A stretch of DNA of 64,000 nucleotides from Octopus bimaculoides. Taxonomy: Eukaryota. The stretch is taken from assembly GCF_001194135.2 (NCBI RefSeq), contig NC_069000.1:6784633-6848632 (forward strand). The letters are read 5' to 3'. Below the pieces are notes generated by a model, which saw only the letters and a list, made by a program, of their open reading frames with translations, was not told the DNA's origin and made no database searches. Shown piece after piece: positions 1,165 through 29,293 of this stretch (its first letter is position 1; the number at the start of each line of letters is the position of its first letter). The translations under genes were made by a program, and so were the position numbers.

Positions 1165-4100
1165 TGTAAAGTTTACCTTTGAAGGTGCTGGTGTTGAAGA
1201 TGGTGTTGTAGAATGGTATAGGATGATTTGGGGCTGGCAGCGTTCTTCTGTCTGTAGAAGAATGGTAAAATATTGTGTGAGGAATATGAGGAATATTTTA
1301 AAAGTATACACATACAGAATAACATACACAAACATACATATATATATATACACGCACAAACATTCAGACATACACACACACAAACATACATACACACACA
1401 GAAACATACATACAATTTCATACACATTAACACATTTGCACAACACACAAATTTACAAGTGGGCAATAAAGAAATAAGAAACGTTAGCATGCCGGGTGAA
1501 ATGCTTCGTGGTATTTCATCTGTCTTTATGTTCTCAGTTCGAATTCCACTGAGGTCGACTTTGTCTTTCATCCTTTTGGGGTATTTAAATTAAGTACCAG
1601 TTTCATACTGGAGTCGATCTAATTTCAGGCCTAGTACCTAGAGTAGAAAAGAATATAATAATTGGGACATTATATTTTTCATGTGTACAGGCACAGGCAT
1701 GGCTGAGAAGTTTGCTTGGCAATCACCTTGTCTTGGGTTCAATCTCACTGTGCAGTAACTTGGACAAAGTATCTTCTACTGTAGCCCCAGGTCAGCCAAT
1801 GCCATGTGAGAGAATTTGGTAAATAGTAAATGAGTGGAACTATTCGCGTGTGCATGTGTGTGTGTGTCTTTGTATTTCCCCCCAGCATCACTTGACAACC
1901 CGTGTTGGTTTGTTTACATCTCTGTAGTTTAATTAGAGGTTCGACCGCTAGAATAAGTACTAGACCCAAAAATAAGCACAAAGGTCGGTTAGTTTGACGA
2001 CCTTCAAGCAGGTGCTCTAGCATGGACGCAGTCCAATGACAGAAACGAGTAAAAGATAAAAGATAAAAAAAAGCATTCACTTTACTTACAGAGAAACAAA
2101 TACACCATTTTGTATCTGGAAAAAAAAAAAGAAAGAAAATTACAAAGAATCTTTGTGTGTGTGTGTGTGCGCGCGTGCGTGTGTGTGTGTGTGTGTGTGT
2201 GTTATCAGTATAAGTGAGGTAACATTATAGAGTGGGGAGACATCATTCTCATCAAGCTGAAAATATGTCTTAGAAGAGTGATTGAACACTACAGTTCAGT
2301 CCAAGCCAATGAGGCTGGATATGATCCATGTGAATATCTGGGCCACTGAAGCACTCAGTTAACAAGTGTTCAATGTTGTTAAATCTTGATAAGAAATAAA
2401 GGACTGCTAACCTGCTCTGTTGGACTGTTAAGTTGTTAAGTGGAACAGCTAAGCTGGACTGCTAACCTAATAGTAAAGCTGGACTATTAAGCTGGATTGC
2501 TAAGCAGGACTACTAAGCTGGATTGCTAAGCTGGACTGCTAAGCTGGACTACTAAGCAGGACTGCTAAGCTGGACCGTTAACTTGCTCGGTTGGACTGCA
2601 GCTAAGTTGAAGTGCTAAAGCTGCTAAGCTGGACGACTAACTTCTATATTTAAACTGCTAAGTTGTTAAGTTGAACTGCTAAGCTACTAACTTGAACTGT
2701 TGTCTTGCTGGATTCTAAGGTGGTGACTTTTCCTTTGAATAAACAACAGTAGTTTGGATGGGGAAGGAAGACTCATATACAAAGACAATTATTGGTCTTC
2801 CTCCAAGAAAAATAAAAGCCTTCACCAAGCTTGTGTATATATGTGTATATATGTGTAGGTGTAAGGTCTACTTTGTCTCATGGAGGCCTCAGAGAACTAC
2901 AACATCATCAGTAGTAACAGCAACAACAACAATAAGAGGTTCATGGGTCTGATCACACCCTTCTTCCCATGGGAATGTAAGCTCAATCATGAATCAGTTT
3001 CTTGGTCTTGTCAAACTGCAAAACCACATCTGGTCTCAGAGCAACAATCACAGCAGCAGCAGCAGCAACAACAACAACAGCAGCAAAAATAGCAGTGTTA
3101 ACAATAGCGACAGCAGCAGCAACAGTAACAACAGCAGTAGCAACAATAACAACAACAACAACAACAAAAATCTCACACTCATATCGCAATGTCACAAAGT
3201 AATGTTCATCAGTGAACTAGACTGAAAAACGATGATTTGCAGTTTAGTTCTAAAGACATTCCAGCAAACTCAAAAGAAAATATGTCAGTCACTGTTGCAT
3301 ATGTTACAACAATTTCTTCCTTGTATAGCAACAATGTGTTTATAACACACTTGGTTTGTTGGTACAATATGTTTGACATGTCGTGTTTTGTCAGCCAGAA
3401 GTCCCAGGACCATTGCCTCTAAACAAGCCACTAGTGCTATTCTTTTATTCTTCTATTTGTCTCAGTCATTTGATTGTGGCCATGCTGAAGCATCACCTTT
3501 AGTTCCCAGGACTTATTCTTTGTAAGCCTAGTACTTATTCTTTTGGTCTCTTTTGCTGAACTGCTAAGTTACAGGACGTAAACACACCAGCATCGGTCAT
3601 CAAGTGATGTTGGGGAGACAAACACAGACACACAAACACTTCTTTCAGTTTCTATCTACCAAATCCACTCACAAAGCTTTGGTTGGCCCGAGGCTATAGT
3701 AAAAGACACTTGCCCAAGGTGTCACGTAGTGGGACTGAACCCGGAACCATGTGGTTGGTAAGCAAGCTACTTACCACACAGTCACTCTTGCGCCTGTTTA
3801 TAATTCAGCAAATGAATTATTTGCTGATCAATGCTGGTATCTGCCAACTGATAAAAAAAAAAATTGCTATTTGCTCTGTTTAATTCTTTGGTATCCACAT
3901 AATTTTATCAAATGTAATGCCTTTTATCTCACTGTTTATAATTAATCATATATTTTTATGTAGCTTAGAGATTTTTAAAATGACATTATAGGATAGATGT
4001 TAGAGGCTGGATCTAGCTGGTTTGAACTTAAAACAGGTAGAATATTTCGGTCAGATGTGGCTGGTTTAACCTTTTCGATACCAACCTGGCAGAAACCACC

Positions 4101-4776: not shown

Positions 4777-5085
4777 TCTCAACACCTGGCACAAATATAT
4801 GTACACACAAACAGACAGAAGAATCAACATTACCTCAATTACATGTAACCGTGGCAATAACTTTTGGAATCGGGAGAAACCTTGCAATCTGGAATGAAAA
4901 AAAAATACGAGGAGATTATATGTGTGTGTGTCTGGAGTGTATGTATATGGCATGATATACATAAACACACACATATATGAGGAGTGTATGAAAAGTCTTC
5001 AGTCTCAAAAAAAGAAAACATGGTACAAGACTTCTGATGAAAGTACAAGACTTCAAGGCCCAAAACTTTTCATAAACCCCTTGTA

Positions 5086-5137
<52 letters not shown>

Positions 5138-6676
5138 ACTATCATCATCAGTGTTTTAAATCCAGGATTTGTCCCTGTTAACAGGGCTGGCCGGATCTAC
5201 CTCAATGCCATAGTAACCAAGGTAGGCAGGTGCAGCCCACTCCAACCTTTGGGCTGGTTGGTGCCCATTCTCCTTTGCTATCATAAGGCTTTTGTGAAGC
5301 TGGTTTTTCAATGAGGAGCATGCCCTTCCTTACCCCCAACCTCAGTTTCTAGACATGAGTGATCCCGAGATCAAGGCCTCTACCATGATTTTTAAGAAAT
5401 GTGGTGGAAAACTAGCTCAGGAAGGCAGGACGCTACTCCCTGAAACCCTTTTCGGGGCTATAGTAGTAGAAGACACTTGCCCAAGGTGGCATGTAGTGAG
5501 ACTGAACCCAGAACCATGTGGTTGAGACGCAAACTCCTTACCACACAGCCACACCAGTGCCTATAGTAGAAAGAATTACCAAAACACAGTGGAATGGATT
5601 GGCAGAATCGTTAGAGCATCGGACAAAATGGTTTGTGATATTTTGTTCCATTTTTTTAAATTCTGAGTTCAAATCCCACCAGGAGTGACTTTGCTTTTTA
5701 TCCTTTCTGGGTCAATAAAATACAGTTGCAGCGAAATTTTGGGCTCAGAAGTGTCAACCAATCCAAAACCCACCCACCCACTTCAGAAGTGCTGGCCTTG
5801 TGCCCATATTATAAAGAATTCTTGAAGTATTACAATAAGAATGGTTAAGTATTTAGCCCCTTGTGGGCAATAAAGAAATAAGAACGGTTTAAGTATGATG
5901 GTGCTTCACAAGAAGGAACCAAGGTTAAAGGTTTAAGACATGGTTAAGACACATGCACACACATGCATGTGCGTGTGTGTGAGTGCGCATGTGTGTGTAT
6001 GTGTATGTTTACGAAGAAACCATCGGAAGCAGTAACAAGGATGCAATCTCAGTGTTACATTAAAAGTTGCACTGCTTTCTGAGCCCAAACCCCACCATTA
6101 TCACCATCATCATCATCATCATCATCCTCATCATCATCATCGTTGTCAGCACCCCCTGCTACCACCAGTAGAACATCACCAACACACCATCATCATCGCT
6201 ACTATCTATGCCATAATCACCACCACCACCACCACCACTGCTAGCATCAATGAACACAACTGCAATAAAAACAACAAGTGGCATAAAACAAACACAACAA
6301 AACTATAAAAAAATCACAAAACAAAACAAATAAATATCAAACAAAAAGACTGCAGCTGTGCAGATTGATTGAGGAAGTTGACTGAACTGTTTTAGGGGAC
6401 ATTATTATTACTATTATTATTATTATTAATATTATCATTATTATTATCATTATGTGTTGGTGGTGTTTTGTTGTTGTTGTTATTAGTGGTGTCATTGATA
6501 GTGATGATGTAGTCGCTGGTGGGGTGGGAGTGGGGGTGGTGGTCAACTGGTCAAGACATGCCCAAAAGGCATCACATGTTTGTCTTCTCTTCCGGCAATT
6601 ATGTGAAAGACAAAGGTTGGCGAAAATGGAAAACACTCCAGATTAAAAGACAACAACCACCACCACCACCACCACC

Positions 6677-6713
<37 letters not shown>

Positions 6714-9700
6714 ATAGTAGTAGTAGTAGTAGCAGGAACAACAACAACAACAGCAACAAAAAGGAATATAAAATGATGGTGGTGGTAGCAATGACAGTGT
6801 TGGCAGTGGTGGTGGTAATGAAAAATGTTGATCAGAAGAAGAAAAGGGGAAACTTACTTGTGAGAAAGGTCTTTGAAAGTTTCTATGCTGGGGTCGAAAC
6901 AAACAGCAGTTCTGTAAAATAGATTTATTAACAAAAAGGATTTAATTAAACAAATTTTAAGGAAAAGAATAAATAAATAGATGTTAAAAAAAAAAAGAAA
7001 CAAAAATGAAATTAAAAAAAAAGATTCTAGTCTGATGAGAGTTTGAAGATTTGTCACAAGAACTGGAAATATCTTTAAATTTGTTTCAGTCATTGGAGCA
7101 AGGCCATGCTGGAGCACCCTTTTCAAATGCTTTAAGTCAAACGAGCCAACCCTGGTACTTATTTTTTATGAGTCTAGCACTTATTCTATCAGTCTTTCTC
7201 ACAAACTGCTAAGTCATGAGGATGTAAACAAACCAGCATTTGCCAAGCAATGTGGAAGAAGTCAAGAAGACTCGTCTGGCGTGCTAACATTTCTGTCAGC
7301 TTGCCACCTTAACACACACATATTATCAATGTCATAAGATAGAGAAATTCAAAGGATTGGTTTGGTCCAATGGTAGAACAGCAGTCATGTTTACAGGAGG
7401 TGTGGGTTCAAGTTCCAAGAGCAACCTTCAACTTTTTTCTCTCAAAATTAACCTAATAATTATAGACTATTATTTATACCTACATCTGCTTCATGGTTCC
7501 CCATTCAAAAGAAGATTATATATGCATGTGCATGTGTGTGTGTGTGTGACTTGTGGTGGTGTCACAATCTCATGACTGTAAACGCAGTGCTCTAACCACA
7601 GAGCCATGCACCTTCTTATAGTAAATCTCTAGTTTTCTGAGAACGCATCCAGGAGTAAAGGCCAGTTCATAAACCTGTTTACCTTATAGTGGGAACGTCT
7701 GTAGGCTGTGACTGAATCATTTCATTAAGCAGTTTGTCACACATCTCCACCTCTTCTAATGGAAGTATCTCATTGGTCAAAATATGAGCATCAGGTTGGT
7801 TCTCTTCTGTACAAAATATCACACCTTCTCTAAAAGTAAAAAAAAAAATATTAAAAAAAAATGTATTAAATACATTACAAAATACTTGCTATGTGTTTGT
7901 ATGTGTCTGTATGTGTTTATATGTTGTATCCTTGTTTTGTTAATTGAATTTCAACAATAAGGGTACGGTGACATTATCGTTTTTATTGAAGGAAGATAAT
8001 TTTGTCAAGTTGTGAAAGAGAGAGAAAGGGTGGGAGATGAGCAGGAGAGAGAGAGAGAGAGGAAGGTGAGAGAGGGTGAGGTGGGAGGTGAGAGAGGGTG
8101 AGGTGGGAGGTGAGGGAAGGGAGAGGGGAAAGAAGTGCAAGGGGAGGGAAGGAAGGAGGTGAGAGCTGGAAGGGTTGAGAGAAAGGAAGGGGTTGAGACA
8201 GAGGAAGGTGGGAGAGAGGGAAGGTTGGGACAGAAGAAGGTGGGAGAGAAGGAGGGTTGAGAGAGAGAAAGGTGGGAGAAAGGGAGGGTTGTGAGAGAGG
8301 GAGGGGTCGAGGGAGAGAGGTAGGAAGAGAAGAGTGGATGACAGACAAAAATTAGAGACCAGACTAAAACAGGACAAATGTCCCTTACCACATCAAAAAA
8401 AAAAAGAATGAAATTAAAGCTTACTTGGGTGGCATAGTCAAAAGATCAGGGTAGGCACACTCATCAGGATGTTGCCAATAACTCTGGTGCCGCAGTCGGG
8501 ACCAATAGTTCCGGTGTACTTTGATGACATTCAAGATACTCTCAGCTACACTGTAACAGAAAAACGTAAGGGTAAGGTGTGTGGTTTGAAACAGACTGCA
8601 GCTGCTATTTCTAGCATGATGTGTTGAGTCGGCAGTTATTGATGTTGTTGCTGTGGTTTTAACCCCAGGTCAGTCGTGATTTGGGAGATCTATGATCAAA
8701 GTGCTCCAACTGTGACCATCCCCACATTCATCCACACCCTTCTTGAATACTTTTGATCATAGGCCGGCTGGTTCAGGTTTGACCTAGGGCTACATTAGAT
8801 AATGTAGTCCAAAGAAGGCTACATTAAATAATGTAGTCCTAGATACACTATACCAGAATAAAGGATTTGATAGTTGCTGTTGAAATACATTTGGTCATAG
8901 GTCTGACAATAATGACGACGACGATGGTGGTGGGGATGATGACCTGATTGGAAGAGTAGGAATATTCGAAGTAAAGCTTACCTGTCTGAAGGAGGCGCCA
9001 GTGGTCCCAAATCAGGGCAAGGATCACCTAAAAGACTCTTTATGGAATAGGCCACACCCTCAGCCAGAGATTTCAGACAGTAACCACCCTGAAACAGTGA
9101 ATAATTACTGGTATTTAGAGAGGGGCACACAAAGAGTGAGAGAGGTGGAGGGGAGAGAAAGAGAGAGAGAAAAGTACGATAGAGAGAAATGCAAAATGCT
9201 GTCCCCATCCATGGGTCTTGTCAGCCCACACTTTGAGTTGGCACACTTAATATTGGCACATTGAAAGGTAAGCTTAATGAGATTGCCAGAGGGTAAGCAA
9301 AAAAGGTAAAGGTGATGCTTTAGATAGAAATAATTACAGAGGTACTCTTTCTATCATGGTCAATGTAATGATCACATGCTACACACCTTCCTTCCAAGCA
9401 CTGCTGTAAACAGCAGAAGTGAGCTAGAACGTTAAAACTTAGTGCACGTGCACAGTTAGAATTCAAGGTTAATCTTTGTCAGGCAGCCTTAATGGAATCA
9501 GATGGAAGGCTATGAAATACTGTAACTTACCTCGAGGATAGTACAAATTTTTCCATTGGCTAAAGTAGACAGCATATGTGTAAAATGAGCATAAGCCATA
9601 GGGGACACACTCATTTGACCCTAGAAAAAGAATAACATGTTTAAAGCACAAGATATTAACAGTATTATTTAAAGAACATATATGCTAACTTATCCATAAA

Positions 9701-11028
9701 AATATATATATTAGAACATCTATACTAGCTTATCCATAAAAATATATATATTAGAACATCTATACTAGCTTATCCATTAAAATATATATATTAGAACATC
9801 TATACTAGCTTATCCATTAAAATATATATATTAGAACATCTATACTAGCTTATCCATAAAAATATATATGTATATATATTTTACAATTCTGCACTGATAT
9901 TGTTTTTCTCTTGCTCAGAGATTTAATAGAACATATTTCTCTCTTGTTATAAATAATTAAAATATTACTATGCAAAGACATTTCCTAAACTAACCCCATA
10001 TTTATCAGTTTTGGTTAACCCTTTTGTTACCATATTTCTGTTGAGATGCTCTGTGTTTCTTTCAATTAATTTTAAATATGACAAAGAATTTAGTAAAATA
10101 ACTTAGTTATCATTAAGCTAGTGTTAGGAACATAAATTGTGACTAAGTTTTGGTGGAAGATTTTAATTCAGAACTTTTGGAAACAAGACATTTCTCCTAC
10201 AGAGCCAGGGGTGGTTTCAGGCGGGTTGATATCAAAAAGGTTACACACACACACTTCCACTCCACTCAATTCCACTGACAAGATATTGGTAAGCAGAAGG
10301 CTATAGAAAAAGACAGTTAGCAAACATGTCTTATAGTGAGATGAAATGTTATGTGATTGTGAAGTGAATGTCTGAAGAACACAAGCATATTAGCATCCTT
10401 TCTGTATATCGGTAAAAACCAATTCCAAAGGTGATTGAGAGACATGAGACCAACACCAATAGATTGTAGTGTTTTAGACATTAATTCATTAACACCATTA
10501 TCATCATCACTATCATCATCACCATTACCATCATCATCATCAACACCACCACTATCATCATCACCATCACCATCATCATACCAACATCATCACTAATACC
10601 ACCACCACCACCACAACCATTACGATCATCACCACTAACATCACCATCACCCTTGCTGCCATTAATACCACCACCACCAGTTCCATCGTCATCGTCATCA
10701 TCCATAGTATTTCCTCTGCAAAAAAATGGACTTCACCTTACTTGAGGAAGGAAGGCTTGAGTAAAAGGAAGAGCACATTAGTACACGGTACCTTGATGTC
10801 ACCAAATGCCGAATCAAATCCTGCAGAGATGAGGACAAGCTGGGGATTGAACTAGAAGCCGAAAAAGGAACAAAAAGAAACTGAAAAGTTGAATATGGGT
10901 GAATACATTGGGAAGTTTAGATTGTGTTGACCTCAAAATCTCTGGGTTGTGCTGCAAATTACCTCAAATGGATCCTGAGAAATGCTTAAATGGTAAAAAA
11001 TATTCCTTAATATTTCTGCCATGCCACC

Positions 11029-11060
<32 letters not shown>

Positions 11061-13675
11061 CCTTTCTACTGGAAGCACACGGCCTCAAATTTGGGGGAAA
11101 GGAATTAGTTGATTACATCAACCCCAGTATTTCACTGGTACTTAAAGGATAAAAAGGATAAAAAGGTAAAGTCGACCTCGGTGGATGAAAGGCAGAAATT
11201 ACACCGCAGAATTTGAACTCAAAACATAATGAGTCAGAGGAGACATTGCATTTTTTCCCAACACTAATGACTCTGCCAGTTCATTGCCTTAAAATGATAA
11301 TCGTTTCTGATTTAGACACAAAGCAGGCTAATTTAAGGAGTGGTAGGGGTGATTGATACAATGGACCGTCCCAGTATATGACAGGTACTTAATTTTAACA
11401 AGCCTAAAATGATGAAAGGCATAGTTGACATATGGTAACTGTAGTGGTAGTAAAAGATAGTTAAAGACGGTTGGTGGTGGTAGGGTGGTGGTAGTGGTGG
11501 AAGTAGTGGTGATGTTCACAGTGGTGGTGTTAGCAATGATGGTGGTGGGGGGAACTGGAGCTTGTGATGGTGGTGGTGTTAGTGATGATGGTAGGGGTGG
11601 TGGTATTAGCAATGACAGTGGTGCTGGTAGTGTTGGAACTAGAGGTTGTGGTAGTGGTGGTGTTAGTGAGGATGGTGAGGAGGATTGGAGGTTGTTGTGA
11701 TGGTGGCGCTGGTGTTAGTGATGACGGTAGGGGTGGTGTTACAACTAGAGGTTGTGGGGGTGGCGTTAGCAACGACAGTTGTGTTGGATCTAGAGGTTGT
11801 GGTAGTTGTGTGGTGGTGATGATAATAATGGTGGTGGTGGTAATAAATGTCAAAATGGTGATAGTTAATATTACTGACTGCTAGTTACAAAGACTTGATC
11901 ACAAAACATAACAAATGCTACAAGACAAGGCATTCAGTCCACCATGCTACCTACCATGTCCACCATCCCACCAAGCTACATAAATAATTGAATATATATA
12001 TATATATATATAAATATTAGTGCTAAGCAGTGTTTAGGCATAAGCAAAGTTTAGGTTAGTTAAAATATGTTTGTGGAATATTTCAACTGCTAAAAAGTAA
12101 ATTCACTGCAGTTAGCATAAAGAAAAATATTTCTCTTATGGTATAAAGGTGAGTAAACACCTTATTTGTTCAGCGCCACCATATATCAGGACTCCCAGAC
12201 ATTGATGTTTCAAGTTAATTGGTTTTTATCAATGGAAGGTACCTAAGGGAGGCAACTCTGAACAAATCTTATAAAGCAATGGCTTTATGTAAAATGCAGT
12301 CAACAACATTGACTGATTTATTGAATAAATTTACTCTTTAGTGTTTCAAGATATTTTTACGCAGTTTTTGTAAATATATCTGTTAAAATGAGATGTCAGT
12401 GTTATTTTCATTTTTGCATAATTAAGACGACAGTTTATTAACTGCACACTATAGATATATAAATGTAAGTATGTATGTATGTAAATATCGATATATATAT
12501 ATATGTATGTATGTATATAATACATTAATCTGTTTAATAATAGTTATTACTTATGTTTAGCTGAGTAAGATATACAGAGAGAAGGTTTTAATGATGAGCA
12601 GATGACTGAACAGCATACCTCAGGGCATCCAAGGGCTGCATCATAACCAGAGGATATTAAAACCAATTGAGGATCAAACTGAAATCGAACATCACAATAT
12701 AACACATGTACACAGAATTAAAACAAACAAACAAACAGAAAACAATTATATACAAATTATACAAGTTTGGTCATCAATAACATTTATATATATTTCAGTG
12801 TTGCATTTGTCTTTCTCAGTATTTTGATTTTGATTAGAGAATATCAGGGGGAAAACTAAAGAATTTAGACCATGGAAAAACCATTCTAGATATTTAACCT
12901 CTTTCTTTTTTTTTACCATATTTCTCTCATAATATTTTAAACCATATTTTTGTGCTACTTTCTTTTTTTTTTTTTAAATAATTTTGAAAATACTGAAGAA
13001 TTTATTGGAATGACTTTGTTCCTTATTAAGTTGGTATTTGGAACATAAATTTATGCGAAATCTTATGGGAATGTTATAATTCAGATCATTTCAATCCATT
13101 AGTTACCATATTTCTGTTGAGAAGGAAGCATATAGAAGATGTGGAAGGTTAAAAAATGGAAAACGAAAAAGTAAAAATTTAAAAGTAAAAACAGTAGAGC
13201 TTAAATTATAAGGCTAGAAACATATCAACACACACACATAAAATATATAACAGTAAATATAAATCTCAGTTGATTCGCAAAATGAAGGAAATGCCTTCAT
13301 TTACAACAGAAGATCAAAAATAAAATCTCAGATGCAAAAAAGAAACGAACACGCAATACAATGAGAAAAGTATTAAAAGTGCCCCTTGCACAAATTGCAT
13401 GGCATGTGCACACTTGCTCATACGAGCATCCACAAAAATGTAAGCATATGCACATATGTGGTTTAGTGCACATGTGATTTAGTGTTTGTCCCCCTACCCC
13501 CACCCAACCATCTCTTGACAACTAATGTTGGTGTGTTTACATCCATGAAACTTAGCAGTTTAGCAAAAGAGACCGATAGAATAAGTACTAGGCTTACAAA
13601 GAATAAGTCCTGGGGTTGATTAGTTCAACTAAAGGCAGCCGCAGTAAAATTACTGAAACAAGTAGAAGAATAAAA

Positions 13676-13719
<44 letters not shown>

Positions 13720-16700
13720 CAATATTTAAATAAGGTCATTACTACAGAATAATGCCCTTATATAAATATAAATGAATAATTATATTCTTGGGAATAAAAA
13801 ATGATGGGTTTTTTTTCCCATATGAATTTTTTACAAACTAGCTTCCTGATAAAATTCTTGTAAAAGATTTTTATCCCATTATTGATTTAATTATAGAGAT
13901 ACATACATACATACATACCTTGTCAGTCAACCTGCAATATATACCCTGTTAGTTGACCAATACATATTTTTAATATATATTTGATGTGAATTCAAAGAGA
14001 CAAGGAGATGAAATGAGCGATAGCTTACCTCATAGGCAACTGGCATCAAAATATGATGGAAGATGGCAAGATAATCTGATTCTGTTAATCCAATCTAGAA
14101 ATAAAGAACATAGCAGTGTTCTAGAACATGTATATAGAGTGTAAAGGGGTGTATATAGAGTGTAAAGGGGTGTATACAGAGGAGCATAGAGGTACAAAGA
14201 ACAGTGTGCATAAAGAGTTAAATAACATGCATTTATACAGGTAAATGCAGTGTGCATAGAGGTGTATATGGAAATCTACAGGGGTGTATAAAGCTGTGTA
14301 TAAATTGTAAATACTGTAAATATACAGGTATATATAGGATGCAGAGATGTGCATATGGAAGTCCAGAGAGATGCATAAAACAGTGTATATAAAAAGTATA
14401 CATAACATGTGTGTGTGTGTGTGTAATAAGAAAACAGAAAATGGAGATAATATTGATGAACAACAATTGATTTGCATCAATTATTATTTATTAATTATTT
14501 ACAAAAAGACTGGATCCTCGGTGGAATTTGAACTCAGAATGTAAAGACAGATGAAATACCACTAAGCATTTCGCCCGGCGTGCTAACGATTCTGCCAGCT
14601 CACCCGCCTTGATGATGAATTTAATAATGATGATAATGATGATGCTAATGATGATGATCCTTACCTTGTTTAAAGGAACATTGATGTTAAAGCCAAGCCC
14701 AGGACCTTTTCCTACAAAGTCGTAGTCAGATTGTCGTAAACAGGGCCAGAATTGTCCATTTTGGTAACGGTGGATGGAGAAGTATAAGACACTGGTAGAA
14801 GGACAAGAAGACAGGGTTATACCAATGTGTGTGTATGTGTGTGTGTATGTGAATATCCATGTTGATTAAAATTGATGGAGAAATATAAGACACACATAGA
14901 ACAACAACAACAAGGAGACAAAATTATATCAATGTTTGTGTGTGTGTGTGTGCATATGTATGTGTCTGTGTGAGTGTGTGTGTATGTATGAGCAAAAAGG
15001 ATTACATCAATATGTGTGTACATGTATATGTGAACTTGTGTGTATGTATGGTTGTGTAAATGAAATATCGGCCAAATTTCCTTCACTTCATATCCTAATA
15101 TTTCAGAAAAAGTTATATAATACACTATGAGGTGTGACAGTTACAGCTAAAAATGTCACTGATCAAAGGTCTGCTGGATGAGGGCAGACCTAGGGTTAAA
15201 CAAGAAACAGTAAAGTAATCTTTCTGTTGTTACTTACCGCGGATCGTCATAGTAACTGTACTGTGTAGCCTGGCCGTGATGAACGTCCCAGTCAACAATC
15301 AGGATCCTGTTAATTAACAAGATAATAATCAATTACAAAAAAACAGAGTCAGCATATTTGATTATGGGACACAAGTATACAACAGTGAAATATCATGCTA
15401 TATATGTAGGTGTATATGTAGGTGAAGACACATGGCTCAGTGGTTAGAGCATTGGGCTTACATTCATGAGGTAATGAGTTCAATTCCTAAACTGGGCTGT
15501 GTGTTGTGTTCTTGAGCAAGACATTTTATTTCACGTTGCATCAGTTCACTCAGCTGTAGAAATGAATTGCGACATCACTAGCGCCAAACTGTATTGGCCT
15601 TTGCCTTGAATAACACCAGTGGCACAGAGAGGGGAGGCTGGTATGCATGGAAAACTGCTCATCTTCCATAAGCAATCTTGCCTGGATTTGTGTTTCCGAG
15701 GGGAACTTCCTAGATGCAATCCCATGGTCATTCATGATGGAAGGGGGTTTTTATGTATGTGTATATCTCTCTCTCTCTCTCTGTCTGTCTGTCTGTATGT
15801 ATACATATAGTCCAACTCATGCTAGCATGGAAAGCGGACATTAAACGATGATGATGATGATGACATATATATACATACACACATACACATACCATGAGCT
15901 TCTTTCAATTTCCATTTACCAAGTTTACATACACGGTGTCACACAGCGGGACTGAACCCAAAACCATGCGGTTAGGAAGCAAACTCCTTAACCATACAGC
16001 CATGCCTACACCTTAATAAAGTACTTAATTATCTCTTGAATATGTATGTATTAAAAACTTTTGGGTCAAAATCTTTATTTACAATAATTGGAGACACAGT
16101 GTCTAGATAAGAAACAAAATGTTTTATTAATAAGGTCCTTTGTTGACTCTTAGGCCCTTTATTTATGATAAATTCTTACCTTTCAACTCCCTTTGATAAA
16201 GCATGGGCAGCAGCGATTCCTACATTATTGAGATAACAATAACCACAGAACTCATTGTAGAGGGCATGGTGGCCTGGAGGTCTGGGAAGGACAGAGAAGG
16301 AGAGAGAATTGTAGGTGAATTATAGAGTACATGGTGGTGGCGGTGTTGTGGTGGTGGTGGTGGTGATGGTGGTTGCAGTATGGCGATGGTTGTGGTGGTG
16401 ATGGTGGCAGCAAACTGGAGTGTATGGAGGTTTGAGGAAGGACAGAGATTAAACAGAAATAATATTAGTCACGGTGGTAGTAGTGGTGGTGGTGGTGACA
16501 GCAGTGGTGGTGGTGGTGGTGGCGCAAGAGATAGAGGTCATTCCTAGAAACAACAAAAGATTTAATGAGCAAGCAAACATTCTGTACCAGAGAAGATAAT
16601 TAATTAACTACCACTACTATCCACTACCCCACTCCTGTACAAGAAAAGTCACGAATTGTTCATTAATATATATGACTGTGTATATATATATATATATATA

Positions 16701-19581
16701 CGCTTTTCAATTGAGCTAACTCAAAGTTGCCATGCAAACTCCCCACCATTTTTAACATAGACATGCAAATAAAATAAAGGATTTTACTCTTACCTCACTA
16801 AGGCAAACCCATTCCTTATCTGTGAATAAGAGAAATAATAATAATAATAATCACAGAACATTCAGGAATAATTGTATTGCTACCATCAACATCATCATTT
16901 TCAACAGTTTCGTGTCAGTTTCAGTTGCATCACATATATACTCACGCAGGTGTGTATGCAATATTATATTTTGAGGACGTAGAATTGTTAGTGCATATAT
17001 GAAATCTGTTTTACTTTGTTGTAGGATTGGTTTTACCGTTTCTGCTGCTATTGGTACTGTTCCTGCTGAAGACGGTGGTGGCGGTTGTAGTGAAGGTATT
17101 TTAATGATTCTTCTGCTTGTTGTATAGTTTATGTACAATACAATGAGCTGTATTTGTTTGTTGAATTATGGTAATGTGGTGTAAGTGTTATAATGGTTGC
17201 GAGGACGACTGCACAGTGTATATGCTGTGAGAGTCGTTTAATGTGTTGGATGATGCATCATATGTGTTGCAAGATGCCAACAGTTAAACTTATTCCTCAC
17301 TGCATCCTCTTTTCAGATAAATATTTCTTTAAGAAAGTCTCTTACCTTATTTTCAATAACTTTATCAACGAGTTTCACTGTACAGCCAAGTGCTATCCAA
17401 GCACATTTGTTAGTGTCCTGCAATGGTAAGGAGAAAAGAAATAAAATTCAACTCTTATGGTACCAGCCCACCTGAGGTCACCACCTTTACTTCTACAACA
17501 CCAACCTACCTGTGACCAACACTTTTGATTCTATGACACCAACTCACCCAAGACCTTGGGTTCTATGATTCAAAACTTCTTATTTTAAAGTATATAAGTG
17601 CAGAAGTAGTTGTGTGGTAAGAAGCTTGCTTCTTACCACACAAGGCGGCGAGCTGGCAGAAACGTTAGCACGCCAGGTGAAATGCTTAGCGGTATTTCGT
17701 CTGCCGTTACGCTCTAAGTTCAAATTCTGCCGAGGTCGACTTTGCCCTTCATCCTTTCGGGGTCGATAAATAAAGTACTCTGAGCTACTTGCTAATAAAT
17801 CCTATCCAAATCTTCCTCCAGTTAACAACTATAAAACAAAGTGTCTAAATTAAAGATGGGATTGTCACGGTTGGAACACTTTTGATCATAGATATGTTGG
17901 GTCAAAGTTGAGCTGACAGGAACGAAAATTCAGGAGGAGACAACTAACCTTTAAACGTTTATGACATAGATATACGAAACAATAAAAAAATAACCTGTAA
18001 AATTGATATAGATACAAATTTGGCAAATGCATCTCATGTAGTATACACTCATATATTCCTCCCACTCGTTTTTGGTTCCTCAAATATTGCTGTTACCCAA
18101 ATTAATCCTTCACGAAGCAAATTGCTTAATACTCAGAGGAGATAACTTATATGAGTGTAATATTTCCGTTTAATATTTAGCCGCTACATTTGATACTAAA
18201 ACCAGCTTTAAAACAGACCATAGAACTATAAAAATACATTTCTTCCTACAACAAATGCGATGTAATGTATTTAAAAATATCAAATGTCTTAAATCTATTT
18301 TTTTTAAATAAGCATACTATGTAGAAACACATTATTTCAGCAAGAAGAAACAAAAGTCTTCTCCCTTAGTTAAACTGCCATTACTGCGTCGACATGCTAA
18401 CATCTGGAATTTCATTTGTATTTATATTTAAAACAGTTTATGGAAAAAGCCTCTTCGTTACTTCCAGAAAAAATTCTGTATTAGAACTGTATTATGCCTG
18501 GCAGTGTTAGGAGTAAAGTCAAAAGGTCATGGACCTATCGACGTCACAAGTCTTTGTGGGTGTTCACTGGCATGTTTATATATGCTTGTAATGTTTCATT
18601 TTATAAAAAAATATACTGAAATTACACTTTACCTTATGAAAGTAAAGACTGTCGTATTTAGTGGAAAACTCTTTTAATTCCTCGTTATCCATTTCCTCTG
18701 TTTTAATCAGAGCATCAATCAAATTTTTGCTGTGTTGTAAAAGTGCCATTTCTTCTGTTCCCACGCAACTCTGAAAGTGAAAAAAGAATCTCAGAATGTA
18801 ACCATTGTTTAAATAACAAGTGTATGTGTTTGCTTAACCCTAACCCTAACCAACCTGAGGGAAGTGCAGGAGAAGGAGGGTGGGAGACAGCAGGATAGAG
18901 ATGGTGGCAAAATGCCAGACATACTCCCAAGGAGCAGGGATCAGAATATATTATGCCCTGGCACTTGCCACCATCGATATCTCTCTCTTCCTTTACTCAA
19001 CCTTGAGTTTCAAATGCCATAATATATATAAGTGACAGGATATTGTGAAGGGAGTGTGAGTAAGTGACAAAAGACCTGGGTATGTCTGGAGTTGAGGTGG
19101 AGGCTACTGGATAGCAATGATACAGAGAAACGGGTGTGAGGACAGGATTGGGGAGTGAGAGCTAGGCATAGTGTATGAGGGAGTTACGTGTGGTGAAGAA
19201 ATAAGCATAAATTTCACAGATAAATCTGAATACTAAATGGTGAATCCTAACTGCCAGTTCTTAAGTGATCTTAATGAAAACCTTCCATCAAAATTTCATG
19301 TCAATTTATTTATTTTTTCAAATGCCAACTTAATATTGACAAAGCTATTTTACAAAATTCTTTATTATTTTTTAAATTAATTAAAACAAAAATCATGTTT
19401 CCACAGAAATATGGTAACAAAGTAGTTAATTCTTACATCAAGTTGTTGACATCTGTCAATAAGGTTTAGTTCATTACATCGTTTAAAGGCCTGGATAACT
19501 CGCTGTGGCTGTTCTGTAAAGTCAGGGATCCAAAAACACTCATGTTTGGTCATTTCTGGGTTGTAAATGAAACCAGTTGAA
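189..19581 (-). CDS. HDAC10: Class IIb histone deacetylase (HDAC10/HDAC6 family), spliced gene span; 3' end lies beyond the window start
   Basis: Phase-consistent GT-AG exons in transcript order: 19437-19581, 18633-18770, 17346-17417, 16794-16819, 16180-16281, 15238-15306, 14665-14791, 14029-14094, 10792-10851, 9531-9620, 8982-9088, 8425-8550, 7683-7829, 6858-6911, 4834-4888, 4460-4507, 2090-2115, 1177-1251, 189-257. Translation contains [41 protein letters not shown] and LEGGY. The second domain is degenerate as in HDAC10. The HDAC10 versus HDAC6-paralogue label is not certain. Confidence 0.92.
770..1112 (+). mobile_element. Probable retroposon (LINE) 3' end with (AAT)n tail
   Basis: GC-richer segment ending GCACTGCTCTCTCACTC followed by about 13 AAT units. 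Confidence 0.45.
1177..1251 (-). CDS. HDAC10: HDAC exon [25 protein letters not shown]
   Basis: AG/GT, 75 nt, phase 2-2. Confidence 0.75.
1700..2070 (+). mobile_element. SINE family B copy (diverged)
   Basis: Head and ACCTTG core, (GT)n, tail GCATGGACGCAGTCCAATGACAGAAAC and AAAAGAT repeats. Confidence 0.75.
2090..2115 (-). CDS. HDAC10: HDAC micro-exon IQNGVFVSL
   Basis: AG/GT, 26 nt, mirrors exon 16794-16819. Confidence 0.82.
2400..2705. repeat. Degenerate 13-bp tandem repeat
   Basis: Consensus GCTGGACTGCTAA. Confidence 0.85.
3040..3166. repeat. (CAG/CAA)n trinucleotide field
   Basis: CAGCAGCAG and AACAACAAC runs in an intron. Confidence 0.9.
3441..3796 (-). mobile_element. SINE family B copy
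   Basis: Colinear with 62049-62435. Confidence 0.85.
4070..4292 (+). mobile_element. piggyBac-like MITE (~222 bp)
   Basis: TTAA|CCTTTTCGATACC ... AAAAAAAGGG|TTAA, with TTAA flanks and CCC/GGG-type termini. Confidence 0.75.
4460..4507 (-). CDS. HDAC10: HDAC exon [16 protein letters not shown]
   Basis: AG/GT, 48 nt, phase 0-0. Confidence 0.72.
4834..4888 (-). CDS. HDAC10: HDAC exon [18 protein letters not shown]
   Basis: AG/GT, 55 nt, supplies the needed phase 2-0 change. Confidence 0.7.
6858..6911 (-). CDS. HDAC10: HDAC exon [17 protein letters not shown] (start of pseudo-domain)
   Basis: AG/GT, 54 nt; resembles the RTGLVYD start of HDAC6 domain 2. Confidence 0.82.
7683..7829 (-). CDS. HDAC10: HDAC linker exon [49 protein letters not shown]
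   Basis: AG/GT, 147 nt, open in the required phase 2-2. Confidence 0.85.
8010..8345. repeat. Polypurine (GA/GG-rich) low-complexity tract
   Basis: Repeats such as GAGAGAGGGTGAGGTGGGAGGT and AGGAAGGTGGGAGAGA. Confidence 0.85.
8425..8550 (-). CDS. HDAC10: HDAC exon [41 protein letters not shown]
   Basis: AG/GT, 126 nt, end of domain 1. Confidence 0.9.
8982..9088 (-). CDS. HDAC10: HDAC exon [35 protein letters not shown] (catalytic Tyr)
   Basis: AG/GT, 107 nt; matches ORF 8978..9208. Confidence 0.95.
9531..9620 (-). CDS. HDAC10: HDAC exon [30 protein letters not shown]
   Basis: AG/GT, 90 nt. Confidence 0.93.
9691..9869. repeat. 40-bp minisatellite, about 4.5 near-perfect copies
   Basis: Unit TATCCATAAAAATATATATATTAGAACATCTATACTAGCT. 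Confidence 0.95.
10019..10240 (-). mobile_element. piggyBac-like MITE, inverted copy
   Basis: TTAA|CCCTTTTGTTACC...GATATCAAAAAGG|TTAC; reverse complement of 4070-4292. Confidence 0.75.
10792..10851 (-). CDS. HDAC10: HDAC exon [20 protein letters not shown]
   Basis: AG/GT, 60 nt, Zn-ligand Asp in GFD. Confidence 0.95.
11470..11845. repeat. (GGT)n-derived cryptic repeat with internal duplications
   Basis: GGTGGT runs with repeated GGTGTTAGTGATGA.GGTAGGGGTGGTG and AACTAGAGGTTGTGG. Confidence 0.75.
14029..14094 (-). CDS. HDAC10: HDAC exon [22 protein letters not shown]
   Basis: AG/GT, 66 nt. Confidence 0.93.
14665..14791 (-). CDS. HDAC10: HDAC exon [42 protein letters not shown]
   Basis: AG/GT, 127 nt. 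Confidence 0.95.
15238..15306 (-). CDS. HDAC10: HDAC exon [23 protein letters not shown] (Zn ligands)
   Basis: AG/GT, 69 nt. Confidence 0.95.
15422..15750 (+). mobile_element. tRNA-derived SINE, third family
   Basis: A-box GGCTCAGTGGTTAG, B-box GAGTTCAATTCC, central TTCTTGAGCAAGAC...CACTCAGCTGTAGAAATGA; a related copy lies at about 25160-25440. Confidence 0.72.
16180..16281 (-). CDS. HDAC10: HDAC exon [34 protein letters not shown] (catalytic His dyad)
   Basis: AG/GT, 102 nt. Confidence 0.95.
16794..16819 (-). CDS. HDAC10: HDAC micro-exon IRNGFALVR
   Basis: AG/GT, 26 nt, conserved NGFALVR motif. Confidence 0.9.
17346..17417 (-). CDS. HDAC10: HDAC exon [24 protein letters not shown]
   Basis: AG/GT, 72 nt, phase 0-0. 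Confidence 0.88.
17644..17779 (+). mobile_element. tRNA-derived SINE, family A
   Basis: GGCGAGCTGGCAGAAACGTTAGCACGCCAGGTGAAATGCTTAGCGGTATTTCGTCTG...GTTCAAATTCTGCCGAGGTCGACTTTGCCCTTCATCCTTTCGGGGTCGATAAA. Other copies at about 1480-1650+, 5595-5820+, 11060-11290-, 14500-14610-, 32740-32920+, 34000-34090-, 35000-35190- and 53690-53870-. Confidence 0.85.
18633..18770 (-). CDS. HDAC10: HDAC exon [21 protein letters not shown]...KYDSLYFHK
   Basis: AG/GT, 138 nt; matches ORF 18576..18764. Confidence 0.9.
19437..19581 (-). CDS. HDAC10: HDAC exon [48 protein letters not shown]
   Basis: AG/GT boundaries, 145 nt, class IIb N-terminal motif. Confidence 0.9.
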
Positions 19582-20178: not shown

Positions 20179-20384
20179 CTCATTCCAACATCTAAGATGC
20201 AACAGATAAAACTGATGTTCATGATAAAGTATGAGAGGAAAAGAAAATGTCACTTAAATGTTTTTACTTACTTTGAAGCCATTTTTACTTCTTCAATCCT
20301 TTTTTTTATTTACTGGAATAGAAAAAAAAACAATTTTTATTTATTAATACATTGCAACATAAACAGAAAACAACCCCCAAAAAC

Positions 20385-25484: not shown

Positions 25485-28400
25485 TAAATCCTCGAGTATA
25501 GTCCGCCCTTGAGTATAATACGCAGGGGATTTTTAGGGGGCTGTGCCTCTGAAAAACCTAAACCTTGTGTATAATATGCACCCCTTCTCTAACTTGAGTC
25601 AAGGAGGTCTATATACCGTCCTTGGTTTGTAAACGTATATACGGTAACATCCTTTATTATTATTGTATATATAACAGCAAGAGGTGCAAATGAAGGTAGC
25701 GACATCAAACTTCCTTATTCACCAAATACCACATATTAGAGAAGGTTCTCAATAATAACAGTTAAACAAAACGGTGGTGCCCCAGCTTTGACCTGATACT
25801 GAAAAAAAAAAAATATGGGTGGTTAATTTACAATTTTACAACCTAAATATATACGCTGCTGAGCACTTTGTCTAGCGTGCTAGCGATTCCGCCAGTTCAC
25901 CTGTATAGAAATATTGGTTTCAAATTTTAGCATAAGGCCGGCTTAATAAGTTATTTCAATAAACTCTTCGTTATTTTCAAAATTTAATTTAAACAAAGAC
26001 AATGTACTTCAACAGAAAATATTTGAAAGAGTGCAACAGGGTAACAAAAGGATAAAAAAAAATATTCAATGAATATATTTAAATATATTAGCAAAGTAAG
26101 TATTAACAATCTTGATAAAGTTAGCTAAAGTATATATGGGTACACCCACCCACACATACACAGACAATGCTTCGAAGTTTGTTAAGTGCTAATGTACGAA
26201 ACTCTTGACCCTTGAGTCACTTGCGTTAAATATTAATCAATATATGTATGTAGATAGATGTACACACACACACACAAAAACATGAGTACACAGGTACAAA
26301 ACAAGGTGAAGAAAAACTACTTGAATAGCAAAAGTAGATTAAGACACTGTTATTTTTTTTTCAGCTTCAATAAAATAGTGTGTGTATGTATGTATGTATA
26401 TATGTATACATGTAGATAGATAGATAGTGTGTGTATTGATACAAGTATTTATGTATGTAAAGTGTGTGTGTGTGTACATGTATTACAGAAATGAAACTTT
26501 GAATGTAGTTTATCTCTGAGGTATTTTTTGTGTCTCCAGAACCTGTTTTTGGTGCAGAAATAGAATATATGATATTATCTAACCTTTATAGGTTAATGAC
26601 ATTGTACCTTCACACAGCCTAATAGAGGTCAACAGCTATACAACTCTTAGACTTATACCCATACAGAAATTGTCTTTTATTTTATTTTTTTTCCTGCTCT
26701 AGATGCAAAGCCTGAGGTTTTTTGGCTGGGGTGTGATCCAGTCAATTCCATCAACTCCAGTGCTCAACGGGTACTTATTTTACTGACTGTGAAGGGATGG
26801 AAAGGAAAGACATGTTTTTAAAAAAGAAACCTACAAGTCTGTCTTGGAGTGCTTGTGAATTGGTGATCACGTCTACAAGTGATGGTGTGCGCAAGCCTAG
26901 TGCGAGTGAGAGTGATTCAGAAAACGATTATAATAATAATATTTTTTTTATTATAAATAATCTTGACATTCTTTTTACTTTACATTAAATATTCTTTACA
27001 TTCTTCTGTTGTTTTATTACCATTTATTTACGAGTATTATAAATTTTATAGATAAAATATTTTTCTGGGCACAATTGCTACTATCGGAAATATTTTTCTG
27101 GGAATTATTGCTACTATTGGAAATTATGCTCTGCTTTACGAGTTTTCGCTTTATGAGTGATCTCTGGGAACAAATTAACTTATATATCAAGGCATTACCA
27201 TATTATTAGGAATTGTAAAAAAACAAAAAAAAAAATTTAATATTTTATGTATTATAGACATATAACCAGTTTATTACAGATAAATTTTAACAATAGAACC
27301 CCTGTTGAGAACCACTGTGAACTGGACAGTATGATAACTGTCACACCATATAATTGGTTTTAATTAACAGTCTGTCTCTCATGCTGAATTATATATTGGC
27401 AAGGCAGAATTTTCACTGTAAAATTTCGTTCAGTAGCACCAGTCTCATAGTTAATGACCCAATGTGCTGGTAACAGATGCAGCTGTCATTCCCACTTGAC
27501 ATTTATGATTTTAATTTCCATATATCCTACATATTTGCTGTGTTCACATTTAAGTTGTAAAATAAATAGATATGTTTGCTGCTATGGCCCAGTTCACTTA
27601 GCTGTTCCACTTAATTTGTTGCTCTCGTACCACTTTCACACAGACCCTTAAGACACAGTTCTCTCTTGCTACCAATGCTGTAACTACCACCACCCTGAAT
27701 TGTCCACTTTCTATAAAACTCTTTTCTCCTGCCTAAGCCTCAGCCAGATTTGAAATAAGAACATTAATGAAATAATGTGCCATTCAAATTGTCGACCCTC
27801 CTGTCATAAACAACAGATGAGGGTTTCACAACTTCTTGCGGGGCAGCCAGTGCAGATGATTTATTTATATTTATCAAATTGACATTGACTCTCTGAGTGC
27901 TCTTGTTATTATTATTAGTGAAAATTCATTATGTAATTATTAATTTCTTATCATCGTTTAATGTCCGCTTTCCATGCTAGCATGGGTTTATTGCCTTAAC
28001 TTCCCTTCCACCCACCCACCTTTCTCTAATTTATCGACTTCAAAGTAACAACTTTTATGTTTTTATAATTTATTTTTTCAATTTGCTACAGGTCATCAGG
28101 TCAATCCTGTCCAGAGTGGACAATCGTAGAACTCCAAGGAGATCTTGAAATGCGATACCCTGTGCCATTAGAGGGTAAATTTATTGGAGATTTACATTTC
28201 ACAACTAAAGTAAGAGCTTTCATTCATTTTTTATCATCATCATTATTACCATCACCCTCATCATTTAAGATCCCATTTTCCATGCTGGCATGGGTTGGAT
28301 GGTTTGACAAGATCTGGCAGATTGGAGAGCTGCACCAGGCTCTAATTGTCTTGTTTTGGCAAGGTTTCTAAAGCCAGATGTCCTTCCTGATGCCAACAAC

Positions 28401-29293
28401 CTGAACGCACTGGGTGCTTCGATATGCCACCGGCACGGGTGCTAGCTGTGTGACACCAGTATCTACCACAACTATTTCACTTGGTCTGATGGGTCCTTCC
28501 CTCAAGCACGACATATTGCCGAGGGTGTGGTTTATTTGTCATAGCCTCTATGAGGCTCAACTCTTGAAGGGTGCTTTTTACATGTCACTGGCACAGACAA
28601 TCTTGGTTCCACTCCCTCACTCAGCTGAGAGGTCCTGCACCATGCTCCAGTGTCTCCTTTTGGCATGGTTTCTACAGATGGATGTTCTTCCTAGCATCAA
28701 CAATTTTACAGTGTGTACTGGGTGCTTTAAAACTATGAATCTCATGAGAGTAGCTTTATGCTGGGGGATGAGAAACAGAGGTAGGGGTAAAGTATGAGAA
28801 AAGGTTTCTTGCTGAAGAGTAGCCAAATGACTTAGTCTCATTTTATAAGAAAGACAGTGATTAGGTGGAGCTGGAAAACAATAGAAATAGGTTAGAAAAT
28901 TATGTAAGAATGAATGGGGCCAGGACTGAGCAGGGGATGTCTGGTGGTGCAAAACAGCAGAAATAGTGATGGTGATACAGTAAACGGGAGAACAAGAGAG
29001 AGGGGAAGGGAGAGAGAGATGACATTTCAATAATCAATTACTAAATAGATTTGATCTGTTTTCAGGAACAACCTGTTCTTATCATTGGTCACCATATCCT
29101 CTATGGAAAAAAGATGCAACTTGAGAAGCCTTTTGTTCTTTTGACTAAGCACCATCATAAAACAAGTGAAGAGACGGATGATGACTCAGCAAACAGAGCC
29201 ACTGAATATGGAGTGGAGGCCATCATTAAAACAAAATTGTTGTTCAAAACACGACCAAAGCCTATTCTTGCGCATGTTCCAAAGAAAGTTTGA
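21809..29293 (+). CDS. CHTF8: Chromosome transmission fidelity protein 8 (CTF18-RFC subunit), complete spliced gene, 122 aa
   Basis: Exons 21809-21831, 28092-28209 and 29066-29293, GT-AG and phase-consistent. Protein [27 protein letters not shown]...[23 protein letters not shown]...LEKPF...[19 protein letters not shown] matches the CTF8 family. Confidence 0.95.
23310..23499. repeat. Inverted repeat, 74-bp arms, 42-nt loop
   Basis: Arms 23310-23383 and 23426-23499, one mismatch. Confidence 0.92.
24011..24082. repeat. (GT)n(TA)n microsatellite
   Basis: About 30 TA units; other long TA runs at 1-40, 5093-5133, 13678-13718 and 25443-25482. Confidence 0.95.
25483..25646. mobile_element. Possible pogo/Tigger-like MITE remnant
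   Basis: CTCGAGTATA near the left end and GTATATACGGTA at the right end resemble Tigger-type termini. Confidence 0.35.
28092..28209 (+). CDS. CHTF8: CHTF8 exon 2
   Basis: CTACAG|...|GTAAGA, 118 nt, EWTIVELQG motif. Confidence 0.95.
29066..29293 (+). CDS. CHTF8: CHTF8 exon 3 with stop
   Basis: TTTCAG|, 228 nt to TGA; ORF 29051..29293. Confidence 0.95.

Follow-up and report, generated by a model that had tools for sequence, protein, structure and literature searches.

Introduction

In class IIb histone deacetylases, Glu or Lys at a single gatekeeper position separates the polyamine deacetylase from the C-terminal acetyl-lysine deacetylase (PMC5454378). This position is held by E274 in zebrafish HDAC10 and by K330 in zebrafish HDAC6 CD1 (Hai et al. 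2017, PMC5454378); the substitution E274L reverses HDAC10 specificity, and the position has been termed a 'hot spot' (PMC5454378). HDAC10 also has a P(E/A)CE 3-10 helix, which arises from a two-residue insertion and whose deletion cuts polyamine activity 15-fold (PMC5454378). Here we describe a class IIb deacetylase gene on the minus strand of a 64,000-nucleotide stretch of Octopus bimaculoides DNA (NC_069000.1, positions 6,784,633 to 6,848,632; hereafter the window, with position 1 as its first letter). This one gene contains two neighboring, homologous exons of 60 nucleotides, one ending in a Glu and the other in a Lys gatekeeper, and we think it likely that their mutually exclusive use forms a gatekeeper switch through which the locus yields two enzymes.

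Results

Two gatekeeper exons in one deacetylase gene

The source gene encodes the O. bimaculoides class IIb deacetylase that RefSeq names 'histone deacetylase 6', a protein of 701 amino acids. Two isoforms are annotated, X1 (XP_014770301/2) and X2 (XP_052830898, formerly XP_014770303), each 701 amino acids long, and their sole difference is the 20 residues of one exon: X1 carries the exon we call A, and X2 the exon we call B. A coding sequence assembled from 20 exons of the window, all with AG/GT boundaries, has 0 mismatches to residues 1-537 of X1 when exon A is included, or of X2 when exon B is included; residues 539-701 are encoded past the window start. The window is AT-rich (GC ~0.36) and holds at least 20 coding exons of this gene, listed here in the order of transcription:

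20272 to 20282, minus strand: first coding exon ATGGCTTCAAA (M-A-S-N, last codon split), donor GTAAGT, located by pattern search and coding-sequence reconstruction and matching RefSeq
19437 to 19581, minus strand: L1-loop exon, ending in QQLD, without the two-residue PEACE insertion
18633 to 18770, minus strand: exon beginning SCVGTEEM and ending DSLYFHK
17346 to 17417, minus strand: coding exon of 24 residues
16794 to 16819, minus strand: 26-nucleotide micro-exon IRNGFALV(R)
16180 to 16281, minus strand: His-His dyad exon, beginning (R) and ending GVE(R)
15238 to 15306, minus strand: zinc-ligand Asp/His exon, ending (R)
14665 to 14791, minus strand: exon ending in NVPLNK
14029 to 14094, minus strand: last constitutive exon before the alternative pair, ending in phase 0 (PVAYE)
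12619 to 12678, minus strand: alternative exon A, 60 nucleotides, phase 0/0, with zinc-ligand Asp and Glu gatekeeper, RefSeq X1
10792 to 10851, minus strand: alternative exon B, 60 nucleotides, phase 0/0, with zinc-ligand Asp and Lys gatekeeper, RefSeq X2
9531 to 9620, minus strand: common acceptor exon after the alternative pair, starting GQMSVSP, phase 0
8982 to 9088, minus strand: catalytic Tyr exon, 35 residues
8425 to 8550, minus strand: linker exon, beginning (S) and ending TMPP(K)
7683 to 7829, minus strand: linker exon, ending TDVPTI(R)
6858 to 6911, minus strand: first exon of the dead second domain, ending (K)
4834 to 4888, minus strand: second-domain exon, 18 residues
4460 to 4507, minus strand: second-domain exon, 16 residues
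2090 to 2115, minus strand: second-domain micro-exon IQNGVFVS(L), counterpart of IRNGFALV, with RPPGHH lost after it
1177 to 1251, minus strand: second-domain exon ending (R), at the place of the His-His dyad exon of the active domain
189 to 257, minus strand: second-domain exon ending (G), with DWDVHH degenerated to DLCPDQ

Exon B is flanked by the acceptor TTCTAG and the donor GTACCG and splices to GQMSVSP at 9620, giving GDIK followed by GQM, exactly as an original prediction made from the letters of the window had read it. A listing of stop-free segments revealed a second, similar segment 1.77 kb upstream of exon B, namely exon A, with acceptor TTTCAG and donor GTATGC. The two exons are equal in length (60 nucleotides) and in phase (0/0), no exon lies between them, and their last codons encode Glu in exon A (GCPE followed by GQM) and Lys in exon B. 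When the six-frame segments of the window were searched by hmmsearch with a hidden Markov model built from homologues, the exon A segment was found at E = 5.2e-10 and exon B at 1.3e-7, with no third copy of the gatekeeper exon. A chance open reading frame is thereby excluded for both exons.

Exons A and B are identical at 12 of 20 residues but at no more than 34 of 60 nucleotides. Of the 12 residues in common, a single one is encoded by the same codon in both; the duplication is therefore old, and both copies have been under protein-level constraint. Among the eight residues that differ are a Phe/Tyr neighboring the zinc-ligand Asp and, two positions ahead of the gatekeeper, a Cys/Asp. The genome of O. 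sinensis has both exons and the same two RefSeq isoforms, and over exons A and B together the two species differ at 4 nucleotides, all of them synonymous. We also considered exon A as a decayed pseudo-exon and rejected this: its splice sites are intact, it matches O. sinensis at 59 of 60 nucleotides (the change being synonymous), and it shares 17 of 20 residues with an aphid exon.

The protein itself was reached indirectly. In an initial homologue search with the window protein, no match exceeded 60% identity and none came from an octopus. The best match, from Solemya velum, then served as the seed of a profile-free search, which led to a 701-amino-acid protein 97% identical to the window model. 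The same 90% cluster also holds O. sinensis X1 and X2 as well as O. vulgaris and UniProt models, the last two carrying exon A (Glu).

The original prediction had proposed a Lys-gated enzyme, effectively a CD1-only HDAC6 that should repel acetyl-polyamines. Because X1 and X2 differ only in the alternative exon, that description covers isoform X2 only: the Lys gatekeeper is true of X2, exon A places Glu in X1, and a different exon with a Glu gatekeeper thus exists in both the genome and its annotation. At these two levels, this is the outcome that the original prediction had itself named as counting against it. That the gene has a Lys gatekeeper only, and makes a CD1-only HDAC6 in an HDAC10 architecture that is inactive on acetylpolyamines, is now very improbable. 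Exon B is intact and used in RefSeq X2, and in Solemya velum a gene of like architecture (P0136) has the Lys exon only in its genome, as this reading would have it. However, exon A, 1.77 kb upstream, has flawless signals for splicing, is present in RefSeq X1 of two Octopus species, in O. vulgaris and in UniProt, and agrees at up to 17 of 20 residues with Glu-type exons of distant phyla.

The active domain

The first domain is a Hist_deacetyl domain (PF00850; 284-291 bits in Pfam) and, in a sequence search of the PDB, matches HDAC6 CD1 and HDAC10 with 342-381 bits. All catalytic and zinc motifs are present, namely RPPGHH, DWDVHH, G(F/Y)D and GGY. We found the motifs quoted in the original prediction on the minus strand (RPPGHH at 16266-16283, DWDVHH at 15276-15293, CGYC at 16236-16247 and GGY at 9080-9088), and its N-terminal loop sequence lies inside the exon 19437-19581.

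Each alternative exon encodes a beta-strand, the zinc-ligand Asp of the G(F/Y)D motif, and a loop that ends in the gatekeeper at the mouth of the active site. Alignment to solved structures fixed the gatekeeper column, in which gcpE corresponds to gdpK of HDAC6 CD1 and gdpL of CD2. The Glu gatekeeper is accordingly found in X1 (exon A, GCPE) and not in X2 (exon B, GDIK), and a Lys gatekeeper as in HDAC6 CD1 is found in X2 only. AlphaFold models of the O. sinensis isoforms, which are ~97% identical to the window protein, reached a mean predicted local distance difference test score of 88.0 (Glu) and 87.9 (Lys), rising to ~97 over the alternative exon, with a predicted template modeling score of 0.93. 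The two models cannot be told apart over this exon: each shows the end of a helix, a strand at 257-263 and then a loop that contains Asp265 and, at position 272, the gatekeeper.

The absence of the PEACE helix had also been put forward as a hallmark of this enzyme. The insertion is indeed missing from the octopus protein, but its absence is not distinctive: in our L1 alignment it occurs in vertebrate HDAC10 only, and the octopus shares its short loop with other molluscs, arthropods, a coral and vertebrate HDAC6 CD1. The missing insertion is therefore the ancestral state, and it says nothing specific about the octopus gene.

The second domain and overall architecture

A dead second domain, as originally proposed, is borne out by the exons 2090-2115, 1177-1251 and 189-257, which lack RPPGHH and DWDVHH. 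In this domain RPPGHH is replaced by SLQKNA, DWDVHH by DLCPDQ, GFD by KLS, and EGGY by EDGQ; past the window, the RefSeq protein reads SAKLSSQK for SAGFDAxxGD and FVEDGQ for LEGGY. All catalytic and zinc-binding residues are thus lost. The domain is still recognizable as a deacetylase fold, with HDAC6 CD2 as its best match (64 bits). Searching the window by tblastn with two-domain homologues, together with the six-frame hmmsearch, detected one deacetylase domain only, and a database search with the Solemya pseudo-domain gave no matches. It was the RefSeq protein that disclosed the exon at 4834-4888, between the candidates near 6.9 and 4.5 kb, and allowed exact placement of the degenerate exons.

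The protein therefore has the arrangement of HDAC10, in which a single class IIb domain with a full catalytic set precedes a dead one. The two active domains and the ZnF-UBP of HDAC6 were not found; for ZnF-UBP this refers to Pfam, which finds Hist_deacetyl only in the 701-amino-acid RefSeq proteins, whose C-terminal end is encoded beyond the window. When we looked for a further octopus gene, a two-domain HDAC6, there was no cephalopod match among the listed proteins, which were those under ~620 amino acids. In Foldseek comparisons, the two-domain model matched zebrafish HDAC10 with a template modeling score of 0.84-0.88 (target-normalized) and the HDAC6 CD1-CD2 tandem with 0.83 (query-normalized). 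The first domain alone superimposed on HDAC6 CD1 with a root-mean-square deviation of 1.0-1.2 Å at 45-46% identity.

Complementary tracts in the flanking introns

Two low-complexity tracts of the introns bracket exon B:

11420 to 11894, minus strand: C/A-rich, G-poor low-complexity tract in the intron between A and B, sense RNA (CAC/CAU/ACC)n
10470 to 10694, minus strand: G/U-rich, C-poor tract, starting ~100 nucleotides downstream of exon B

The CA tract is complementary to the GU tract. RNAduplex gave a CA/GU duplex of -191 kcal/mol, compared with -151 ± 6 for dinucleotide shuffles (z = -6.3); segments from elsewhere in the window gave -60 to -82. Most of the CA/GU duplex energy comes from composition. 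The same arrangement is present in O. sinensis, a weak comparison given introns that are 83-93% identical anyway. As a speculative hypothesis, pairing of the two tracts would loop out exon B and so help to set the choice between A and B. Self-complementary (TA)n-rich tracts also bracket exon A (13667-13732 and 12450-12531), with a duplex of only z = -2.2.

The exon pair in molluscs and arthropods

The same pair occurs in related genes of other protostomes. Equal-length RefSeq isoforms that differ only in the gatekeeper exon are annotated in Daphnia carinata (XP_059352443 and XP_059352444) and in Mytilus edulis, M. trossulus and M. galloprovincialis. Two transcript-sized contigs from a single crustacean, P0144 (Glu) and P0142 (Lys), match almost completely outside this exon and encode a full HDAC6 with CD2 and ZnF-UBP. 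Gene models that fuse both exons are found in Diaphorina, Phthorimaea, Trinorchestia, Ephemera and P0077 (an arthropod-like contaminant), and in these the Glu exon always comes first and the Lys exon second, as in the octopus window. The Glu-then-Lys pair thus extends across molluscs (O. sinensis, mussels) and arthropods (Daphnia, insects).

Glu-type exons carry the signature G(Y/F)DAA.GC.E and Lys-type exons G(F/Y)DSA.GD.K; the Glu type has Cys where all other class II deacetylases have Asp. Exon A is nearer to arthropod Glu-type exons (17 of 20 residues with aphid) than to exon B, and exon B is nearest to Lys-type exons (15 of 20 with both a crustacean and Trichoplax). From these sequence comparisons, the pair is ancient and may predate the split between molluscs and arthropods, with mutually exclusive splicing as the probable basis of the Glu/Lys toggle.

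We also considered whether the pair is universal in molluscs, and rejected this on account of single-exon loci in Solemya and Babylonia. Solemya velum has two class IIb genes whose pairing is opposite to that of vertebrates: P0162 is HDAC6-like (CD2 and ZnF-UBP) with a Glu CD1, the Glu being known from the annotated protein, and P0136 is HDAC10-like (dead domain) with Lys. In this species, a long tandem array of SSLYTPPSR repeats (L001, 34499-35350) directly follows the last exon of a truncated gene model, and probably made that model stop early. Among P0011, P0014, P0042, P0077, P0181, P0301, P0307, P0312 and P0214, deposited models from several arthropods and Mytilus include both exons in tandem, and the Plakobranchus model leaves the gatekeeper exon out entirely; the exon pair seems to have misled annotation in a systematic way.

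The same comparison bears on whether only the Glu isoform matters, exon B being a rarely used relic of the duplication and the Lys isoform splicing noise. Most annotated protostome models are Glu-type (88 Glu-type motifs vs 47 Lys-type in the sequences compared), the gastropod Babylonia lacks the Lys exon, and the complementary tracts around exon B could make its skipping the default. We nonetheless regard a noise isoform as unlikely: in molluscs as well as arthropods, Lys-type exons have retained reading frame, length, the sites for splicing and the signature G[FY]DSA.GD.K, synonymous sites of exon B are saturated relative to exon A, and Solemya has kept the Lys exon alone in one paralogue. 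Moreover, Lys-type exons are found in transcript-sized contigs (P0142 and P0035) and in separate RefSeq isoforms of several genera.

Phylogeny and origin of the gatekeepers

Trees were built by neighbor-joining, a crude method, with bootstrap and with the columns of the alternative exon removed. A bilaterian clade of CD1 and HDAC10 domains was recovered with 95-100% bootstrap, and the octopus domain falls inside it, apart from CD2 and the other classes. Vertebrate HDAC10 and vertebrate HDAC6 CD1 are sisters within this scheme (78-80% bootstrap). In a first tree the octopus fell in a protostome CD1-type clade (100%), with Babylonia, Nucella and one transcript contig outside. In a second tree with broader mollusc sampling, the protostomes no longer formed one clade; Babylonia, Nucella, Plakobranchus and Crassostrea split off together (99%), and the remaining protostome group with the octopus had only 50%.

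The octopus protein is thus not an orthologue of vertebrate HDAC10 and stands among protostome CD1-type domains. Among protostomes, a dead second domain turns up in several lineages apart from one another (octopus, Solemya P0136, Plakobranchus and a crustacean transcript). Taken with the tree placement, this indicates that the HDAC10-like architecture of the octopus protein is convergent.

Vertebrate HDAC10 reads GFDSAIGDPE, which resembles a Lys-type exon with a K-to-E change and not the GCPE exon of protostomes, and cnidarians and Trichoplax have a Lys gatekeeper. This suggests that Lys is ancestral and that Glu arose twice, although 20 residues and neighbor-joining trees lend the idea thin support.

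Predicted substrates of the two isoforms

Splicing would pick either exon A (Glu) or exon B (Lys) between the constitutive exons 14029-14094 and 9531-9620, giving two enzymes identical except at 8 of 20 residues and with the charge reversed at the gatekeeper. By analogy with vertebrate enzymology, we infer that the Glu form would prefer cationic substrates such as N8-acetylspermidine, and that the Lys form would favor a carboxylate close by in the substrate, as in C-terminal acetyl-lysine. Because it lacks the constricting 3-10 helix, the Glu form probably discriminates less strictly than vertebrate HDAC10 does.

Several points weigh against a clean switch of this kind. Some Mytilus RefSeq isoforms carry both exons, in frame and with 20 additional amino acids, so exclusivity may be imperfect. 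The HDAC10-like locus of Solemya velum (P0136) has the Lys exon only and the Babylonia locus the Glu exon only; some lineages can thus do without the pair. For the octopus itself, isoform use is taken from RefSeq models, and no transcript contig for the octopus protein was present in the sequence collections searched; Gnomon isoforms normally need transcript support. Finally, the substrate preferences of the protostome forms are predicted by analogy with vertebrates. The Glu form has a GCPE rather than a GDPE context and lacks the HDAC10 constriction in its active site; with this Cys and the missing constriction, the analogy to HDAC10 may not hold.

These last points lead to another possibility, in which both isoforms are real and the substrate class is unchanged: the swap would tune catalytic rate, metal affinity, redox behavior of the GCPE Cys, binding of inhibitors or partners, or contacts with the dead domain. 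As many as 8 of the 20 residues differ, well beyond the gatekeeper, and the absent HDAC10 helix is worth ~15-fold in polyamine specificity (PMC5454378). In the vertebrate enzyme, however, the single change E274L at this 'hot spot' reverses specificity (PMC5454378), and nothing else that distinguishes the exon types is conserved as consistently as the Glu/Lys contrast. We consider such tuning a minority possibility.

A switch between a Glu- and a Lys-gated enzyme remains our preferred account of the locus, and it can be extended, tentatively, to a broader scenario that is possible but that we would not yet bet on. An ancient exon toggle of protostomes may let one gene supply both a polyamine-type and a C-terminal-acetyl-lysine-type deacetylase, the Glu isoform being the invertebrate N8-acetylspermidine deacetylase. 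Vertebrates would have hard-wired the same split into HDAC10 and HDAC6 CD1, with their Glu acquired independently (GDPE vs GCPE).

Other features of the window

Three further coding features were recognized by their Pfam domains:

28069 to 28368 and 29045 to 29290, plus strand: two exons of a Ctf8-like gene (chromosome transmission fidelity 8; Ctf8, E = 2.8e-11)
~33200 to 33340, minus strand: exon of a mitochondrial carrier, SLC25-type (Mito_carr, E = 6.5e-7)
~58100 to 58260, plus strand: exon with a DUSP domain (DUSP, E = 5.9e-9), presumably from a ubiquitin-specific protease gene

An assembly gap (a run of N) spans 51294-51834 within a (TA)n and (CA)n microsatellite. A short interspersed repeat is present in multiple copies on both strands (e.g. 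3697-3804, 5461-5610, 32896-33168 and 49559-49816). It is marked in stop-free segments by the recurring pseudo-peptide …HMV(L/P)GSV(S/P)LH(A/D)TLGK(C/R)LLL…, and several copies of it lie inside introns of the deacetylase gene.

Discussion

The gene described here is not itself new, since its sequences and both isoforms are already in RefSeq. We found no description of alternative gatekeeper exons in HDAC6- or HDAC10-like genes in the full-text literature, a search that did not cover the Drosophila catalogue of mutually exclusive exons. What we describe is an annotated but apparently unrecognized splice switch at a specificity-determining residue. This switch is arguably more interesting than the Lys-gated enzyme originally proposed, and its functional meaning is a prediction.

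A conserved natural switch at this residue would amount to an evolutionary experiment, in which specificity was split by splicing in protostomes and by gene duplication in vertebrates. Invertebrates have no HDAC10 orthologue, and the Glu isoform is a candidate enzyme for deacetylating polyamines in them; the two isoforms also offer a matched natural pair with which to probe the gatekeeper without the HDAC10-specific helix. There is also a lesson for annotation: several deposited models fuse or skip the exons, and the automatic names 'HDAC6-like' and 'HDAC10-like' hide the switch.

Among described enzymes, vertebrate HDAC10 (zebrafish 5TD7 and later entries) has the same combination of one active and one dead domain without ZnF-UBP, and its Glu gatekeeper is shared by octopus X1. 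In contrast to HDAC10, the octopus protein is not an orthologue of the vertebrate enzyme, has no P(E/A)CE insertion, reads GCPE instead of GDPE, and has a gatekeeper that is alternatively spliced; its dead domain, moreover, best resembles HDAC6 CD2. HDAC6 CD1 is the best single-domain structural match, with an L1 loop of equal length and a Lys (K330 in zebrafish, K353 in human) at the place of the Lys in octopus X2. Unlike vertebrate HDAC6, the octopus protein has no active second domain or ZnF-UBP, and its Lys is optional and set in GDIK rather than GDPK.

Mutually exclusive tandem exons that switch specificity are familiar from exons 9 and 10 of pyruvate kinase M and from IIIb and IIIc of FGFR2. 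As in those genes, equal-length homologous exons of the octopus locus swap one structural element; unlike theirs, the octopus element supplies a zinc ligand and reverses the charge of a residue in the active site, with an effect that is predicted. HDAC6-like genes of other protostomes (Mytilus, Daphnia carinata, a crustacean transcript pair, Diaphorina, Phthorimaea, Trinorchestia and Ephemera) have the same exon types in the same order and at the same position of the first domain. They differ from the octopus gene in what follows. An active CD2 is kept wherever a full-length model exists, in Mytilus, in the crustacean pair P0142/P0144 and in P0133 of Tuta absoluta, which shares a 90% cluster with the truncated model from Phthorimaea; the crustacean and Tuta proteins keep ZnF-UBP as well.

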